In this document: positions 43,573 through 49,698 of the stretch, piece by piece
Layout of the letters: every line of letters starts with the position of its first letter
Position numbering within the stretch: the first letter of the stretch is position 1
Sequence record: OK040170.1
Length of the DNA: 64,000 nucleotides
Direction: 5' to 3' (one strand)
Made by a program: the position numbers and the translations under genes
The notes under the pieces: model-generated
What the model was told of the DNA's origin: nothing
The model's input: only the letters and a program-made list of their open reading frames with translations
The model's database searches: none

Positions 43573-43640
43573 CGGGGCATAGGAGAGGGCATTTAGCCCT
43601 CTCTTTATTTTTTGTTTCATTGACAAATAAGGAGATCGCT

Positions 43641-44168
43641 TTGTCCATTATTCTTTATCACAAGGGTGTTATTGCTGCTGACTCAAGAGGGATTATTGAT
43701 CAGGGGAAATACACAGAGCGTTTGTGCGGTATGCTCAAGTTATTCTCATTCGGCGGGAAAGTCGTTATGGGGATGGTTGGCGATAACACGACTATTGACT
43801 GGGCGTGTAAAGAGTTCTTTTATTTCAGTGAGAAAGTCATTGAAATGGAGGAGGGGGATTTAGATACGCTTCCATTATCTAAAGACATCCTGGAACGATA
43901 CGGTATGGAAGACTCTACTCGTACGCTTTGCTTCATGACACGTAGACACCATTACTACGTCGGGGTGACTGGTATCATACGCTGGGAGAAAGGTATCCCA
44001 TGGGCAGCAGGTAACGGGATGCGTACTGCTCTGCAATCGTTATCTAACGGATTCGATGTAGAGTCATCGGTGCGGAACGCCATATTGATGAATCCTGATT
44101 GCGGTGGCACGGTAGTCATTCACCATGCTAAAGATCTGGAGCTTATCAAAAGGAAGAAATCTAAATGA
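43641..44168 (+). CDS. HslV/proteasome-beta-like Ntn hydrolase
   Basis: AAGGAG RBS then TTG gives (M)SIILY..VIAADSR; GMVGD, AAGNG and NPDCGG motifs. Confidence 0.65.
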   Translation: MSIILYHKGVIAADSRGIIDQGKYTERLCGMLKLFSFGGKVVMGMVGDNTTIDWACKEFFYFSEKVIEMEEGDLDTLPLSKDILERYGMEDSTRTLCFMTRRHHYYVGVTGIIRWEKGIPWAAGNGMRTALQSLSNGFDVESSVRNAILMNPDCGGTVVIHHAKDLELIKRKKSK

Positions 44169-44644
44169 AAAACTTCGCAGCTTTCTACGATGATAAAGTC
44201 ATCTTTAGTACGAAGATCCAAAAGAGTTCAGGGCTACCGACTACTCTTAGCTGGGATTCTCTATTCACGCCACACGGATTCATTGTCCCCTACTCTCTAA
44301 GCTGTTTCGCTATCCTTGATATCATCGAAGACAACAAGGTTCCCGTTGATCGTTCCGGTGAAATGCTAGGGATGCTCATTACTCCCGAGGGTAGGGTTTA
44401 CGAGTATGCGGTAGGGAGTAACAACAAAGTTATCTGTAACCGTCTGGTAATCGGTAAAGGTTTCCGTCATTGCCGTTCTGCCGATTACCTTACTGAAGAT
44501 ACAATGAACTCTGCGATCCACTTAACAACCAGTCCAGAAGCAGCGTTGGATTGGTTCCACAAAACTTTGCCGACATTCACTAACAGTTACTTCGTCATGG
44601 GTGTCGACGACATCGTAGCCAAGATTAAGGAAAAGGGTCTATGA
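44165..44644 (+). CDS. possible inactive paralog of the upstream Ntn-fold protein
   Basis: Similar length and secondary-structure pattern; no N-terminal Ser/Thr. Confidence 0.4.
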   Translation: MKNFAAFYDDKVIFSTKIQKSSGLPTTLSWDSLFTPHGFIVPYSLSCFAILDIIEDNKVPVDRSGEMLGMLITPEGRVYEYAVGSNNKVICNRLVIGKGFRHCRSADYLTEDTMNSAIHLTTSPEAALDWFHKTLPTFTNSYFVMGVDDIVAKIKEKGL

Positions 44645-45264
44645 ACGAAATAGAAAAAGATGAGGTTGTCACCAGCAGGCCTCCCGCTACTGATCGCGCT
44701 ACGCTTTACGATGTACTGAACGTAGACATCAACAAAGTGGTACTCCGTGTGCGTGGTCGCGTTACGCCGGTTGATGCAGCTAAACGGCTGTTGGCTTTGG
44801 TGGAAACTGCTAGAAGTAAATACTCGGGTGAACATTCGATCGATCTTCATGACGTTTCTGATCATCGTTACATGATCATCGAACGTAATAACGACATCAT
44901 TGAGTTCGGTGGCGTCGATACTACCAGTGACCGTGTCGCCTCAGTTAATCTGTCTTTAGAGGTTGCTATACTGGATCGCGGTATCGAATTCCTCACCAAG
45001 TTCATTGAGATAAAGTCTGCGGAAGTTGATCAGATTTTACTCGGCGGCGGCCGTGCTATTAGTTGCCCGGCTGTAATTGAGAAATACTTCGAAGCTGAAG
45101 AGATCGAACTCTTACGCGATGAGTCTGAGTTACCTCAACTAAAGATGTTTAAACCTAAGGGGATGAACATCCCAGGGAACAACCGATCCATCCACAACAA
45201 AGTTAAACCAGGGAAATTCTTCAACAAAAACAGGAACTTCCGTTCTTCTGGTCGGGGCAGATAA
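44641..45264 (+). CDS. hypothetical protein with basic RG-ending tail
   Basis: 207 aa, ATGA overlap. Confidence 0.75.
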   Translation: MNEIEKDEVVTSRPPATDRATLYDVLNVDINKVVLRVRGRVTPVDAAKRLLALVETARSKYSGEHSIDLHDVSDHRYMIIERNNDIIEFGGVDTTSDRVASVNLSLEVAILDRGIEFLTKFIEIKSAEVDQILLGGGRAISCPAVIEKYFEAEEIELLRDESELPQLKMFKPKGMNIPGNNRSIHNKVKPGKFFNKNRNFRSSGRGR

Positions 45265-45434
45265 TTTCCCCTTGATTCTATGATTCCGGGAAGTAAGCAG
45301 TACAAATAACCCCTCCCTTTTGGGAGGGATTCTTAAGAGGGTCGTCCCTCTTTTTTTGTTCCCTTATTTTTTCAAATACTCTTTAAATAGTTTAGTAACA
45401 ACTAGACTATCACCCCTCCTTTAAGGAATAAACC

Positions 45435-45593
45435 ATGCAACAGTCAGCACCTGCTAATGTAGCAGAAGTAAAACCAGAGAACGCTTATTTCGAATCTGGT
45501 TCAAACGAGCAACCTGTGTCAGTCTCTCAATGCGACTTCCATTACGGTAGCCTGGACGGCCTGGCAACCATTATGGCAAACCCTCAGCACTAA
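45435..45593 (+). CDS. 52-aa hypothetical peptide (not in ORF track)
   Basis: AAGGA RBS; MQQSAPANVAEVKPENAYFESG...MANPQH. Confidence 0.6.
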   Translation: MQQSAPANVAEVKPENAYFESGSNEQPVSVSQCDFHYGSLDGLATIMANPQH

Positions 45594-45604
45594 GGAAAAT
45601 AAAC

Positions 45605-45874
45605 GTGACTAAAGATCTTTCTTCCTATTTCAAACCAGCCGCCGATTCTACTGCTCTGCCAGGTCAAACTCGTGGCGAAACTAAATTAACAACGACCTTC
45701 GACGAGCTCCCTGTAACTGGCGCCGGCGCAAAGGTTATCGATCAAAGTGGTGATTCCCTGGATTCTCTGTTCGACGGCATCGATTTCGACGCGGTAGCTG
45801 CTCGTAACGAAGAGCGGGCTGAAAGCGGTGAAGAGTTCGTCGATGACGGCGACTGCGAAGGCTGCAAGATCTGA
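45605..45874 (+). CDS. stand-alone acidic protein ending in an NrdA-like redox C-terminal tail
   Basis: AAGGA RBS, GTG start; ends EEFVDDGDCEGCKI-stop. Confidence 0.7.
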   Translation: MTKDLSSYFKPAADSTALPGQTRGETKLTTTFDELPVTGAGAKVIDQSGDSLDSLFDGIDFDAVAARNEERAESGEEFVDDGDCEGCKI

Positions 45875-45889
45875 AGATAATTTCAGGTC

Positions 45890-45905
45890 TATATTACTTT
45901 AATGA
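45890..45905 (+). promoter_or_regulatory. phiKZ-type early promoter TATATTAC-N5-TGA
   Basis: 20-mer tctatattactttaatgata is identical to 63949-63968. Confidence 0.85.
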
Positions 45906-45986
45906 TAATCGAATCAGTCGATTAAATCGAGAGTAGGATTTTCCTACTCTCTACTATTTTACAATTTAGTTTAGAGAGATTTACAC

Positions 45987-46361
45987 ATGAGCGTTACATC
46001 TTTGACCAAAGTCCGTTTACCGATTCCATCTTTCTGGCGTCAAAGCGATTTGGAAAAGATCGCAAAAGCTTTGAACAACCGTAGCGTGGTACTGGGTGAA
46101 ACTAACCCTACCTTCCCAGTTAAAGAACCGGGTCGCTTCTACGAAATCAAAAAGCCAACGCATCGCCTGGAAAACTTCCGTGCTACTGACGGACAGTTAA
46201 CCGCAAGTGTTAAGATCATCGACCCTGAAGTGCTGGGTGACATTATCGATGGTCGTTCTTACAATTTCAGTATCCGTCGTAACAATGACGTTTTCGCTAA
46301 AGACGGTAGTACTTGCTCAAGTGCTCCTGGTCTGATCGCGATCGATATCCGTTTTAACTAG
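45987..46361 (+). CDS. degenerate prohead-protease-fold paralog
   Basis: VLGETNP, NFSIRR, LIAID; Ser kept, His lost. Confidence 0.5.
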   Translation: MSVTSLTKVRLPIPSFWRQSDLEKIAKALNNRSVVLGETNPTFPVKEPGRFYEIKKPTHRLENFRATDGQLTASVKIIDPEVLGDIIDGRSYNFSIRRNNDVFAKDGSTCSSAPGLIAIDIRFN

Positions 46362-46408
46362 CCGTTGTGAAGTACGAGTAATTCACTGGCAATACCAGGG
46401 AAACCATT

Positions 46409-46702
46409 ATGTCTGAACTTAAACAAATAGAGGAAGCGATGATGAACATGAGCCAAGTAGAAAAGGAAGAAATGTCGGATGCCCTGATCTCCCTTCAGTT
46501 GTGCAACTACAACAACCCGACTAACAACGTCGCGATTAAGAACTGCGCTGCATCTATCCGTGGCCGGGCACTGACTTTACCGGTACGTGATCTGATGCAT
46601 CTGGTTCAGATGTCGCCGCAACCACTGCGTTCAGTTATCAACGCGCTGCAGAAGTACCGTCCAACTGACTTGAAGGAAGGTACGTTGTCAATACACCGTT
46701 AA
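46409..46702 (+). CDS. hypothetical protein
   Basis: 97 aa, AGGGA RBS. Confidence 0.75.
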   Translation: MSELKQIEEAMMNMSQVEKEEMSDALISLQLCNYNNPTNNVAIKNCAASIRGRALTLPVRDLMHLVQMSPQPLRSVINALQKYRPTDLKEGTLSIHR

Positions 46703-46712
46703 CAGGTGGAAC

Positions 46713-47132
46713 ATGGCATTCAACACAACACCAAGGAAACGCGTCCTCGTACTCGGGGACGTACCTATTTATTTCAAGGCGTACGCGAAAGCATACCGTC
46801 TTGATATAAACGACATCGCTAACGCGCTATTACAAGGTGTAGCCTATGTCCTCTCCAACGAATGGGACGCAAACAGCGACCGTGATGAGAACTTCTCTAT
46901 GGCGATTCAAGACTACCTTTATTGGGAGTATGAATTAGCTCAGATAACGGAAGAGGACTTGCAGCACTTAATAGATCGTTGGGAAGAGATCATTCATAGC
47001 GTACTGGTAAACAACCGGTTAGATTGGTTAATTCGGATGGCGGAAAGTAACGGACTTGACGTCGATAGTTGTCGAGATCGTTTCAAAGCTCGCGTCGTCA
47101 AGAATCGATTAGAGATCGAATTCCTGAGGTAA
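46713..47132 (+). CDS. hypothetical protein
   Basis: 139 aa. Confidence 0.7.
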   Translation: MAFNTTPRKRVLVLGDVPIYFKAYAKAYRLDINDIANALLQGVAYVLSNEWDANSDRDENFSMAIQDYLYWEYELAQITEEDLQHLIDRWEEIIHSVLVNNRLDWLIRMAESNGLDVDSCRDRFKARVVKNRLEIEFLR

Positions 47133-47137
47133 GAAAG

Positions 47138-47329
47138 ATGTCCGTAATTTCGATTACCCCTCCGGACTACAGTCCGGTTACGATTTCGGGTCAGGTTGCT
47201 CAAGATAGTCTGCGCGATATCGAAGCACTTGAGGCTAAGTTAGGTATCACACTTCCACGCAAACTTCGTATCACGATGATTGAGAAGTTGATTACCAGCA
47301 AACTTAACAAATGTAATATCACACAGTGA
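47138..47329 (+). CDS. small hypothetical protein
   Basis: GAGGT RBS before ATG 47138. Confidence 0.65.
   Translation: MSVISITPPDYSPVTISGQVAQDSLRDIEALEAKLGITLPRKLRITMIEKLITSKLNKCNITQ

Positions 47330-47703: not shown

Positions 47704-49698
<1,995 letters not shown>

Follow-up and report, generated by a model that had tools for sequence, protein, structure and literature searches.

Regeneration of the active site of ribonucleotide reductase (RNR) by the flexible tail of its large subunit can be rate-limiting for dNTP synthesis and is poorly visualised, and we know of no bacterial or phage protein that acts at this step. The tail of class I enzymes usually carries a CXXC pair, while the CX4C pair of the E. 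coli type is found in a minority (PMC9669993). E. coli K-12 NrdA ends in ...QDDGCESGACKI, with the tail DDGCESGACKI (Cx4C; Cys754/Cys759), and 120 Enterobacterales NrdA proteins share this type of end with minor variation. A CxxC dithiol is also found in thioredoxin, glutaredoxin and NrdH, the redoxins of the RNR reduction pathway. In yeast, RNR is acted on by Sml1, Hug1, Dif1 and Spd1, which are small and intrinsically disordered, and Sml1 acts where the CX2C tail of R1 regenerates the active site (PMC6382339). Other described proteins to be compared here are the Acb4 anti-CBASS sponges (PF13876, N4 Gp49 / Sf6 gp66) and the members of the PHROG phrog_10239, an entry without a function or a stated link to RNR.

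We analysed the last 64 kb (64,000 nucleotides, the whole stretch being called the window) of the genome of the Serratia jumbo phage BUCT660 (Moabitevirus, phiKZ-like; OK040170.1; 272,720 bp). The window contains a two-gene unit, the second gene of which encodes an acidic 89-aa protein with a C-terminal end of the NrdA type. The features of this unit are as follows.

45335 to 45352, + strand: terminator-like hairpin with a T-run, which ends the preceding transcription unit; a terminator is annotated there in Moabite, and the hairpin is conserved in Totoro
45360 to 45422, + strand: conserved intergenic stretch, candidate phage promoter of the two-gene unit
45435 to 45593, + strand: 52-aa ORF (Moabite gp320), co-oriented neighbour, whose product has a single Cys and is conserved in its C-terminal third
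45592 to 45597, + strand: AAGGAA, the RBS of the 89-aa ORF, 7 nt 5' of its GTG, overlapping the stop codon of the 52-aa ORF; an RBS is annotated here in Moabite
45605 to 45874, + strand: 89-aa ORF (Moabite gp321), encoding an acidic, predicted disordered protein with an NrdA-type C-terminal tail, a member of phrog_10239
45867 to 45890, + strand: 10-bp hairpin that covers the final codons and the stop codon of the 89-aa ORF
45929 to 45951, + strand: terminator-like hairpin that ends the two-gene unit; a terminator in the Moabite annotation, conserved in Totoro

The class Ia NrdA tail, whether of the E. coli form or with CXXC as in most class I enzymes, and the end of the 89-aa protein both consist of an acidic flexible stretch, a Cys pair and two further residues, the final one being Ile. 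Unlike the NrdA tail, however, the 89-aa protein is a separate polypeptide with an unrelated upstream part, and is encoded by a genome without RNR. Searches of the protein against Pfam (E<=1) did not detect the ATP-cone, all-alpha or barrel domains of NrdA (PF03477, PF00317, PF02867), and there was no match in Pfam at this threshold, NCBIfam or PADLOC at all. In contrast to the redoxins, the protein has no thioredoxin fold, the AlphaFold2 model being without a fold, and its Cys pair lies at the extreme C-terminus, as in a redoxin substrate. The yeast regulators are eukaryotic and contain neither a copy of the tail nor a Cys pair used in this way, and no relation to Sml or Hug proteins was found in Pfam (E<=1) or among the homologues; the role of the 89-aa protein is, moreover, a predicted one. 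Some Acb4 homologues of Enterobacterales phages end in the same tail, which is the sole part that they have in common with the 89-aa protein, and Pfam did not detect an Acb4 domain (PF13876) in the latter. Compared with phrog_10239, the 89-aa protein has an additional N-terminal motif and a linker.

The 89-aa ORF starts with GTG, where the orthologue of phage Totoro has ATG, and its product ends in ...EEFVDDGDCEGCKI, followed by TGA. Its codon score was 0.469 bits/codon, compared to 0.305 +/- 0.134 for the 25 long ORFs of the window, and the score of the remaining five frames at this position was negative in four and 0.12 in the fifth. Comparison with Totoro gave a dN/dS of 0.076 for the whole ORF and a pN/pS of 0.16 over residues 46-89. 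The AAGGAA, the codon score and the dN/dS agree with the first-pass annotation, which had described an ORF with its own RBS, core-like codons and no sign of decay: this is a real gene under purifying selection, and not a decayed fragment. The same annotation had described a short acidic and probably disordered protein, and we counted 20 D+E against 8 K+R residues, with 15 acidic residues within 46-89. The AlphaFold2 model (mean pLDDT 58, pTM 0.21, a single helix at residues 61-73) is of low confidence, which fits with disorder of the protein, and such predicted disorder is as expected of a tail.

Long blocks of the stretch from 45360 to 45422 are identical in BUCT660 and Totoro, while the adjoining coding DNA has diverged, and this stretch is probably the promoter that drives the 52-aa and 89-aa genes. 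A sigma-70 scan of the stretch gave no match, and since the conserved motif upstream of the two-gene unit occurs only once in the window, no promoter family could be defined. At the other end of the unit, synonymous divergence from Totoro drops from 0.66-0.79 to 0.12 over the last 16 codons of the 89-aa ORF, and the 3' UTR that follows is nearly identical in the two phages. The 52-aa ORF, which has an AAGGAA upstream (45423-45428), is 47% identical to its Totoro copy with a pN/pS of 0.49, and gave no match in Pfam, PHROG, NCBIfam or PADLOC. By its distribution it is a lineage-specific neighbour. It was seen in Moabitevirus only and the neighbours of other family members are unrelated to it, so that the earlier suggestion that it may be a partner does not extend to a general one.

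The 89-aa protein can be divided into the following parts.

45605 to 45637, + strand: N-terminal 11-residue motif MTKDLSSYFKP, common to jumbo-phage family members only
45662 to 45739, + strand: variable linker, residues 20-45, deleted in the Totoro orthologue
45740 to 45823, + strand: family core, residues 46-73, in which the sole predicted helix (61-73) and an acidic/hydrophobic ...DFD... motif are found
45824 to 45871, + strand: acidic run and terminal Cys pair, residues 74-89, ending ...DDGDCEGCKI
45851 to 45871, + strand: NrdA-type tail DCEGCKI, the last seven residues

The N-terminal motif is conserved in Totoro P0002, P0003, P0005 and Erwinia phage Yoloswag gp34, and is absent from the short phage forms and the chromosomal forms of the family. 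Residues 15-54 also appeared to match some giant proteins (P0004, P0006, P0007), but these matches were spurious, being the sum of weak repeated matches to Ig/FN3 repeats. Within the family core, D60 is invariant or nearly so in alignments A2 and A5, as is F61 in A2, and no likeness of residues 46-73 to NrdA could be detected. The end of the protein is far more constant. All 20 of the relatives that were found by homology, rather than by the terminal pattern, retain the last seven residues except for E or D at position -5, and all 20 stop right at the Cys pair and two residues, after an acidic run. The Cys pair is present in every homologue seen, including the divergent forms of phiKDA1 (...TCDGCTI) and ECBP1 (...TCDGGGCTI), which answers the question of terminal cysteine conservation raised in the first-pass annotation.

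The full-length NrdA of T4-like phages ends in ...EDCEGCKI (CxxC), the final seven residues of which are identical to those of the 89-aa protein; the reported resemblance to an NrdA redox tail is thus confirmed. In all, 13 viral-contig loci encode full-length NrdA that ends in DCEGCKI after an acidic run, is 47-60% identical to E. coli NrdA and has an adjoining nrdB. One of these, used as a positive control (L234), showed the ATP-cone, all-alpha and barrel domains (Pfam E 1e-121) and matched the RNR large-subunit gene of T4-like phages. Searches of PDB sequences with phmmer, and with hmmsearch using the family profile, did not retrieve NrdA at E<=10, indicating that the likeness is a short terminal motif and not detectable homology, and the family HMM without its last 8 columns did not find the NrdA tail region. 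As judged from these comparisons, the likeness to NrdA is real but limited to the acidic run and the Cys pair, about 10-16 residues. The DNA pattern for D-C-[DE]-G-C-K-I-stop had at least 120 matches in the genome collection, compared to about 13 expected from an arithmetic estimate, which places the frequency of the terminal motif far above chance. Among the matches listed, the ORFs were true NrdA or family members, the exceptions being one spurious ORF that recurs and a few short ORFs that match by chance. The recurrent one, a non-acidic ORF of ~134 aa with the same last seven residues and ~60 occurrences in viral contigs, belongs to a much-sampled element and also matches by chance.

The phrog_10239 profile (47 positions) matched residues 57-89 of the 89-aa protein with an E value of 1.9e-4, and matched its relatives more strongly (9e-8 for the chromosomal 43-aa protein, and 1e-10 for L139 and L226). 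Relatives of the 89-aa protein were retrieved by phmmer and hmmsearch with E values of 2e-27 to 1e-4. Together they form a large and undescribed family of 38-150-aa proteins, present in many unrelated Enterobacterales phages (jumbo, T7-like, N4-like and Chaseviridae) and in host chromosomes. Our search of the literature found no published description of such a tail protein, in line with the earlier remark that no system like it had been described. The chromosomal branch is a conserved 43-aa gene of Serratia, Erwinia, Pantoea and relatives, found in many Erwiniaceae and Yersiniaceae chromosomes next to ylaC, yedI, dgcQ or cvrA, and in neither a prophage nor a defence island. No homologue of this gene was detected at the DNA level in 5,426 E. 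coli genomes or in plasmids, and yodC, which lies between yedI and dgcQ in E. coli at the place of the small gene of Pantoea and Erwinia, is unrelated.

Orthologous small proteins bear either the CxxC or the Cx4C form of the NrdA tail. The Cx4C form, which is that of the host enzyme, ends 35 small acidic phage ORFs, and some of these sister proteins share their last 10 residues with Enterobacterales NrdA; L268 (Cx4C) is one such protein, and is orthologous to L146 (CxxC) with 60% identity (E 4e-23). The terminal module is invariant in >150 sequences. Among the matches listed, the isolate hosts of the CxxC form are all Enterobacterales with an NrdA ending in ...CKI, and for the Cx4C form one of 48 records lists Stenotrophomonas as host. 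Neighbours of the phage genes include thyA, a deaminase, primase and genes of no known function, and are conserved solely within lineages. Thymidylate synthase is encoded directly upstream in five loci, a dCMP/cytidine deaminase 0.8 kb upstream in four, and a nucleotide kinase about 0.3 kb upstream in phiKDA1; in Y2 and Yoloswag, thyA lies within 2.4 kb. The BUCT660 gene is far from genes of nucleotide metabolism, with thyA 46 kb and tdk 24 kb away. We also considered a RiPP precursor peptide, and rejected it, since there are no maturase or modifying-enzyme genes nearby and the neighbours vary between lineages.

No nrdA, nrdB, thioredoxin or glutaredoxin gene is annotated in the whole genome of BUCT660, and tblastn of the genome with E. 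coli NrdA and NrdB gave only chance segments of ~20 aa (best E 0.12-0.5). The statement of the first-pass annotation that the window is without nrdA and nrdB therefore holds for the window, and for the entire genome as well. Erwinia phage Y2 (the first 50 of 56.6 kb) and Enterobacter phage phiKDA1 likewise contained no RNR, thioredoxin or glutaredoxin gene.

The invariant end and the absence of RNR from the phage may indicate that the 89-aa protein is a diffusible copy or mimic of the NrdA C-terminal redox tail, which acts through the partners of that tail; we give this reading an even chance. The partners engaged would be those of the host, namely thioredoxin or glutaredoxin and the active site of NrdA in its oxidised state. 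Since both cysteines are invariant, thiol-disulfide chemistry, and not docking alone, is probably required. In the version that we prefer, the protein would be a trans-acting dithiol shuttle, which is reduced by host thioredoxin or glutaredoxin and then re-reduces the active site of host NrdA, such that dNDP output could be raised or secured where a phage relies on the RNR of its host. The added value of a free tail is not obvious, as each NrdA (761-aa proteins) already has a tethered one, and whether the effect is a boost or a brake is the point of the RNR-tail reading of which we are least sure.

The same tail mimicry could also serve as a brake, in which the free tail competes with that of NrdA for thioredoxin or glutaredoxin, or for the NrdA active site, and lowers the output of host RNR. 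Such a protein would be, by analogy, a bacterial and phage counterpart of the disordered RNR inhibitors of yeast. Small size and disorder are described for Sml1, Hug1 and Spd1 (PMC4245953), and Sml1 blocks the regeneration of R1 by its CX2C tail (PMC6382339, citing Zhang 2007). Upstream of the tail, the second conserved acidic/hydrophobic motif and the helix could strengthen binding in the manner of a bivalent inhibitor. In the T7-like phiKDA1 the gene has endonuclease, exonuclease and nucleotide kinase genes around it, consistent with salvage of host DNA. However, pure inhibition is chemically awkward, because a peptide with both cysteines is a competent reductant; docking alone would predict Cys-to-Ser variants, and none were seen; and a phage without RNR profits little from starving dNTP synthesis. 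We regard a brake or decoy as unlikely.

The distribution of the tail on other proteins introduces a further, and somewhat less probable, explanation, namely that the tail works as a tag for anti-defence or host takeover that can be moved between proteins, with the likeness to NrdA misleading or blocking an immune sensor or another host protein while dNTP supply is unaffected. In many phages, NrdA-type tails of both flavours are joined to Acb4 (PF13876) domains (L156, L174, L212, L223 and L314 are tail-bearing proteins with this domain), and the tail is joined to other domains as well. As an anti-CBASS sponge, Acb4 belongs to a group of proteins that often occur in fusions with further anti-defence modules, and the paper on Acb4 mentions unexplained extensions in some of its homologues. 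The tail-bearing Acb4 fusion of ECBP1 adjoins a DUF2829 gene, and these fusions and this neighbour do point to counter-defence and against the reading in terms of RNR. DRT defence systems sense RNR activity, and the 89-aa gene is part of a long series of small genes without a known function, as is typical of host-takeover regions. Nevertheless, recognition of the NrdA tail has been reported for no known defence system, PADLOC gave no match, and the chromosomal 43-aa gene lies outside prophages and defence islands. The proximity of family members to thyA, deaminase and kinase genes suggests nucleotide metabolism instead, and small phage functions that are independent of one another are commonly fused, which does not prove that they share a role.

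We consider it very improbable that the Cys pair holds zinc or an iron-sulfur cluster, for example in pairing chains or bridging to a partner, and that the likeness to NrdA is convergent. CxxC and Cx4C pairs are able to bind metals, and some relatives have an additional N-terminal cluster of four cysteines (P0017, P0021, P0022 and phiKDA1 gpORF37) or a zinc-ribbon-like part (L265, with weak matches), but metal binding does not account for the invariance of the residues behind the second Cys, for the acidic run that precedes the pair, or for the recurrence of exactly the two natural forms of the NrdA tail, identical over 7 and 10 residues. The position of the small gene directly after thymidylate synthase in five loci, which is that of nrdA after td on the T4 gene map, hints at the origin of the family, but a phage NrdA that is split and has its tail encoded separately, as the first-pass annotation had suggested, must be rejected given the complete BUCT660 genome without an RNR gene, and such a tail or a decaying vestige of the nrdA 3' end is scarcely credible in view of the purifying selection, good codon usage, RBS and terminator of the gene and the conservation of the family in unrelated phages and chromosomes.

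Returning to the diffusible tail, its extension to the whole family, for which we would claim a little less than even odds, is that Enterobacterales phages and many Erwiniaceae and Yersiniaceae chromosomes encode diffusible 'RNR tails' that tune the re-reduction of host class Ia RNR in trans. These would be disordered proteins of 38-150 aa in which only the NrdA thiol end, in its two forms, is invariant, and the tail could also be borne by further phage proteins, the Acb4 sponges for example. The Acb4 fusions raise the question of whether nucleotide supply is tied to counter-defence. Even if the reading in terms of RNR is wrong, an invariant module shared with an essential enzyme needs to be explained. 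If it is true, bacterial RNR turnover would have its first regulator or accessory factor at the level of proteins, and phages without RNR would have a new means of controlling dNTP supply. A natural and widespread free tail, in two flavours that match the two types of NrdA tail, would offer a defined handle on the regeneration step, and would explain how phages without RNR might control host dNTPs, which bears on replication and on the defence systems that read dNTPs.

The 89-aa open reading frame at 45605-45874 belongs to the Moabitevirus BUCT660, whose annotation includes a tubulin-like protein and both the virion and non-virion sets of multisubunit RNA polymerase genes, identifying it as a phiKZ-like jumbo phage. 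Region 44600-47200 matched Serratia phage BUCT660 (OK040170) at 100% identity and 2050HW, Moabite and related phages at 99.2-99.8%, and by its coordinates the window is the final 64 kb of the 272,720-bp BUCT660 record. The ORF forms a two-gene unit with a 52-aa ORF upstream (45435-45593), and its neighbours are small genes without assigned function, an HslV-like peptidase and an NAD-dependent ligase:

Within 43620-44644: HslV-like peptidase, phrog_1040 (E 2e-21), named ATP-dependent protease subunit in Moabite
Within 43620-44644: 159-aa phrog_8172 protein (E 2e-64), its gene overlapping that of the HslV-like peptidase by 4 nt
45335-45352 and 45929-45951: terminator-like hairpins flanking the two-gene unit, both annotated as terminators in Moabite
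45605-45874, + strand: 89-aa ORF, GTG start, C-terminus ...EEFVDDGDCEGCKI-stop
46409-46702: DUF7740 domain protein of 97 aa (Pfam E 8e-14)
47704-49698: NAD-dependent DNA ligase

The peptidase and the 159-aa protein are a possible phage-encoded protease pair. The start of the ligase varied by source (TTG at 47704 in the ORF listing, a shorter CDS in BUCT660 and a longer one in Moabite). Across region 44600-47200, Pectobacterium phage vB_ParM-25 (record ON375847) was 99.8% identical to the Serratia phages, indicating either a cross-genus host listing or a very widely distributed species.

An AAGGAA ribosome-binding site lies 7 nt 5' of the start of the 89-aa ORF. Its codon score was 0.469 bits/codon, compared to a mean of 0.305 +/- 0.134 for the 25 long ORFs of the window; of the remaining frames, four scored negative and one 0.12. 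Comparison with Totoro, a divergent relative, gave an overall dN/dS of 0.076, and the start position is retained there as ATG. The protein contains 20 acidic and 8 basic residues, the acidic ones clustered at residues 46-89, and AlphaFold2 (21-sequence alignment) modelled a single helix at residues 61-73 (pLDDT 58, pTM 0.21). The ribosome-binding site, terminators, codon score, dN/dS and model together indicate a real, expressed-looking gene with a mostly disordered, acidic product, and the first-pass annotation had described it correctly (a short acidic, probably disordered protein with its own ribosome-binding site and core-like codon usage). The suggestion that the 52-aa ORF is a partner fared less well, since that ORF is restricted to Moabitevirus (47% identity between the BUCT660 and Totoro copies, the C-terminal third being conserved) and provides no evidence for a general partnership with the tail family.

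Synonymous divergence from Totoro (pS) fell to 0.12 in the last 16 codons of the 89-aa ORF compared to 0.66-0.79 upstream, the following ~37 nt did not differ at all (region 45824-45905), and the stop codon lies within a 10-bp hairpin (45867-45890). This low synonymous divergence at the 3' end suggests RNA-level constraint or recent exchange. At the N-terminus, an 11-residue motif (window 45605-45637) is common to the 89-aa protein, Totoro, two metagenomic relatives and the 146-aa gp34 of Erwinia jumbo phage Yoloswag (L246:2171-2611; L-numbers are loci from pattern scans), and is missing from the short family forms and those of chromosomes. This N-terminal stretch probably represents a second short linear motif that only jumbo phages carry.

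The C-terminus was compared with that of E. coli K-12 NrdA (nrdA record NC_000913), which ends ...QDDLVPSIQDDGCESGACKI. A similar end, with small variations, was present in 120 NrdA proteins from Salmonella, Enterobacter, Klebsiella, Erwinia, Pantoea, Pectobacterium, Leminorella and others (nearly all complete ones being 760-762 aa), so that the host-type tail can be defined as an acidic run, Cx4C and K-I. The 89-aa ORF ends in an acidic run, CxxC and K-I. When public collections were scanned with a DNA pattern for D-C-[DE]-G-C-K-I-stop, 13 loci in viral contigs were NrdA, full-length or truncated, with exactly these end residues; over their length they share 47-60% identity with E. coli NrdA, and nrdB is adjacent. 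One of them, L234, contains the three NrdA Pfam domains (E 1e-121), and its match in ~170 T4-like phages (of Klebsiella, Enterobacter, Cronobacter and Citrobacter) is their gene for the RNR large subunit. Among class I RNR tails CXXC is common, and CX4C, the E. coli type, is the minority form (PMC9669993). Since full-length phage NrdA share its end residues, the 89-aa ORF carries a genuine NrdA tail, of phage flavour; the likeness to class Ia NrdA proposed earlier thus holds for the terminal motif, in its CxxC rather than its E. coli Cx4C form. Searches of PDB chains by sequence reported no NrdA, and at the level of sequence the likeness is that of a short motif.

The same scan also recovered a non-acidic ORF of ~134 aa ending in the same seven residues, nearly unchanged in ~60 prophage-like viral contigs (among L129-L240, e.g. 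L132 and L135) and, once, in an Enterobacter MAG (L008). The match is attributed to chance, the ORF apparently being read off-frame from an element that has been sampled many times.

Homology searches made without the pattern yielded ~20 small proteins (38-101 aa), each with the same seven end residues (E or D at -5). Members found by tblastn, all in phages of Enterobacterales, came from Erwinia Y2-like Chaseviridae, Pantoea SSEM1, Enterobacter and Salmonella Koutsourovirus (T7-like) and Yoloswag. Among 122 distinct cores, D occupied -10 in 81%, E or D occupied -9 (82% and 17%), and -7 to -1 were invariant except -5 (E 89%, D 11%), a fixity that is partly by construction for pattern-derived sequences and holds in homology-derived ones too. 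The divergent phiKDA1 gpORF37 ends ...DDGTCDGCTI, keeping the Cys pair and final Ile and losing the D and K; the terminal cysteines are conserved in every member found by homology. The PHROGs entry, phrog_10239, has no assigned function, and profile libraries either list the family without function or lack it. Full-text literature searches turned up no account of proteins of this kind, in agreement with the initial impression that no such system had been described. The closest functional analogues are the disordered RNR regulators of yeast (PMC6382339, PMC4245953), which have no sequence relation to the tail family. A T7-like (Koutsourovirus) subgroup carries an added N-terminal four-cysteine cluster (phiKDA1 gpORF37, L245:17256-17534; L247:1345-1629; and the homology-search proteins P0017, P0021 and P0022).

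When the host-type end (C-E-x-G-A-C-K-I-stop) was used as the pattern on viral contigs, 64 loci were recovered, of which 22 were NrdA, 35 were acidic ORFs of small size (<=110 aa) and 7 were larger proteins. The last ten residues of one small ORF, from Erwinia jumbo phage pEa_SNUABM_2 (L268:355-516; 54 aa), are those of Enterobacterales NrdA, with Cx4C, whereas its orthologue in Erwinia phage Y3 (L146; 60% identity, E 4e-23; orthologues 51-54 aa) has the CxxC end. Orthologous small proteins therefore alternate between exactly the two natural NrdA tail forms, which in our view is the strongest evidence for a putative functional mimicry over a generic Cys motif.

The tail also occurs in bacterial chromosomes. 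In one genome per bacterial species, the D-C-[DE]-G-C-K-I-stop scan gave at least 120 loci, compared to ~13 expected by our arithmetic; among the matches listed, ~110 (of L003-L122) were a conserved ~43-aa gene of Erwiniaceae, Yersiniaceae and relatives, present in Pantoea, Erwinia, Serratia (including the marcescens group), Rahnella, Sodalis, Tatumella, Hafnia, Budvicia and others. An example is:

L006:6205-6336: ~43-aa gene of Serratia proteamaculans, with the same seven end residues as the 89-aa ORF

This gene has its own -10-like box, ribosome-binding site and strong terminator, shows many synonymous changes, occurs on >980 contigs and matches phrog_10239 (E 9e-8). It is located 3' of ylaC in the Serratia/Rahnella group and lies between yedI (5') and dgcQ (3') in Pantoea and Erwinia, where E. 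coli has the unrelated yodC. All sources call it hypothetical, save for a single automatic annotation as 'Conjugal transfer protein TraD'. As its hosts retain full-length NrdA with its own tail, the gene is an addition and not a replacement.

The NrdA tail carries electrons from thioredoxin or glutaredoxin to the active-site disulfide (PMC9669993, PMC6382339). The free 89-aa protein may use the same partners, and we regard it as an even call whether it acts through them. It could do so as a brake on host RNR, by a purely competitive block of these partners; as neither cysteine is ever lost in the family, a redox-active shuttle is favoured, and a boost is somewhat more likely than a brake.

A counter-defence role of the tail is unlikely but is kept in view by fusions: in CxxC and Cx4C forms, the tail is joined as a C-terminal extension to homologues of Acb4 (PF13876), an anti-CBASS sponge (L156, L164, L174 (1913-2266), L212, L223 and L314). 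The discoverers of Acb4 had remarked on unexplained extensions in some homologues. A related end, ...TCDGGGCTI, occurs on Acb4 in G7C-like N4 phages of E. coli (e.g. ECBP1_0056, L254:1492-1872, adjoining a DUF2829 gene), and the tail is also found on a zinc-ribbon-like peptide and on uncharacterised domains (71-360 aa). Since the shortest free forms (38 aa) comprise little besides a helix and the tail, the tail alone appears sufficient for its own function, judging from these sequences. Metal binding by the Cys pair is improbable. A split NrdA with the rest encoded elsewhere, one of the possibilities raised in the first-pass annotation, or a remnant of NrdA can practically be dismissed, as nrdA, nrdB, thioredoxin and glutaredoxin genes are absent from the complete 272,720-bp BUCT660 genome.

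RNR was likewise not found in phiKDA1 or in the first 50 of the 56.6 kb of Y2. BUCT660 carries thyA and tdk, and outside BUCT660 the link of the family to dNTP genes is recurrent. Thymidylate synthase lies directly 5' of the small gene in five jumbo-type loci (Pfam E 2e-116), and dCMP/cytidine deaminase 0.8 kb 5' in four, including Yoloswag; thyA is 1.3 kb 3' in Yoloswag and 2.4 kb 3' in Y2, and a gp1.7-like nucleotide kinase gene is ~0.3 kb 5' of gpORF37 in phiKDA1. In a redox-active role, the free tail protein would be a diffusible shuttle that supports turnover of the host RNR.
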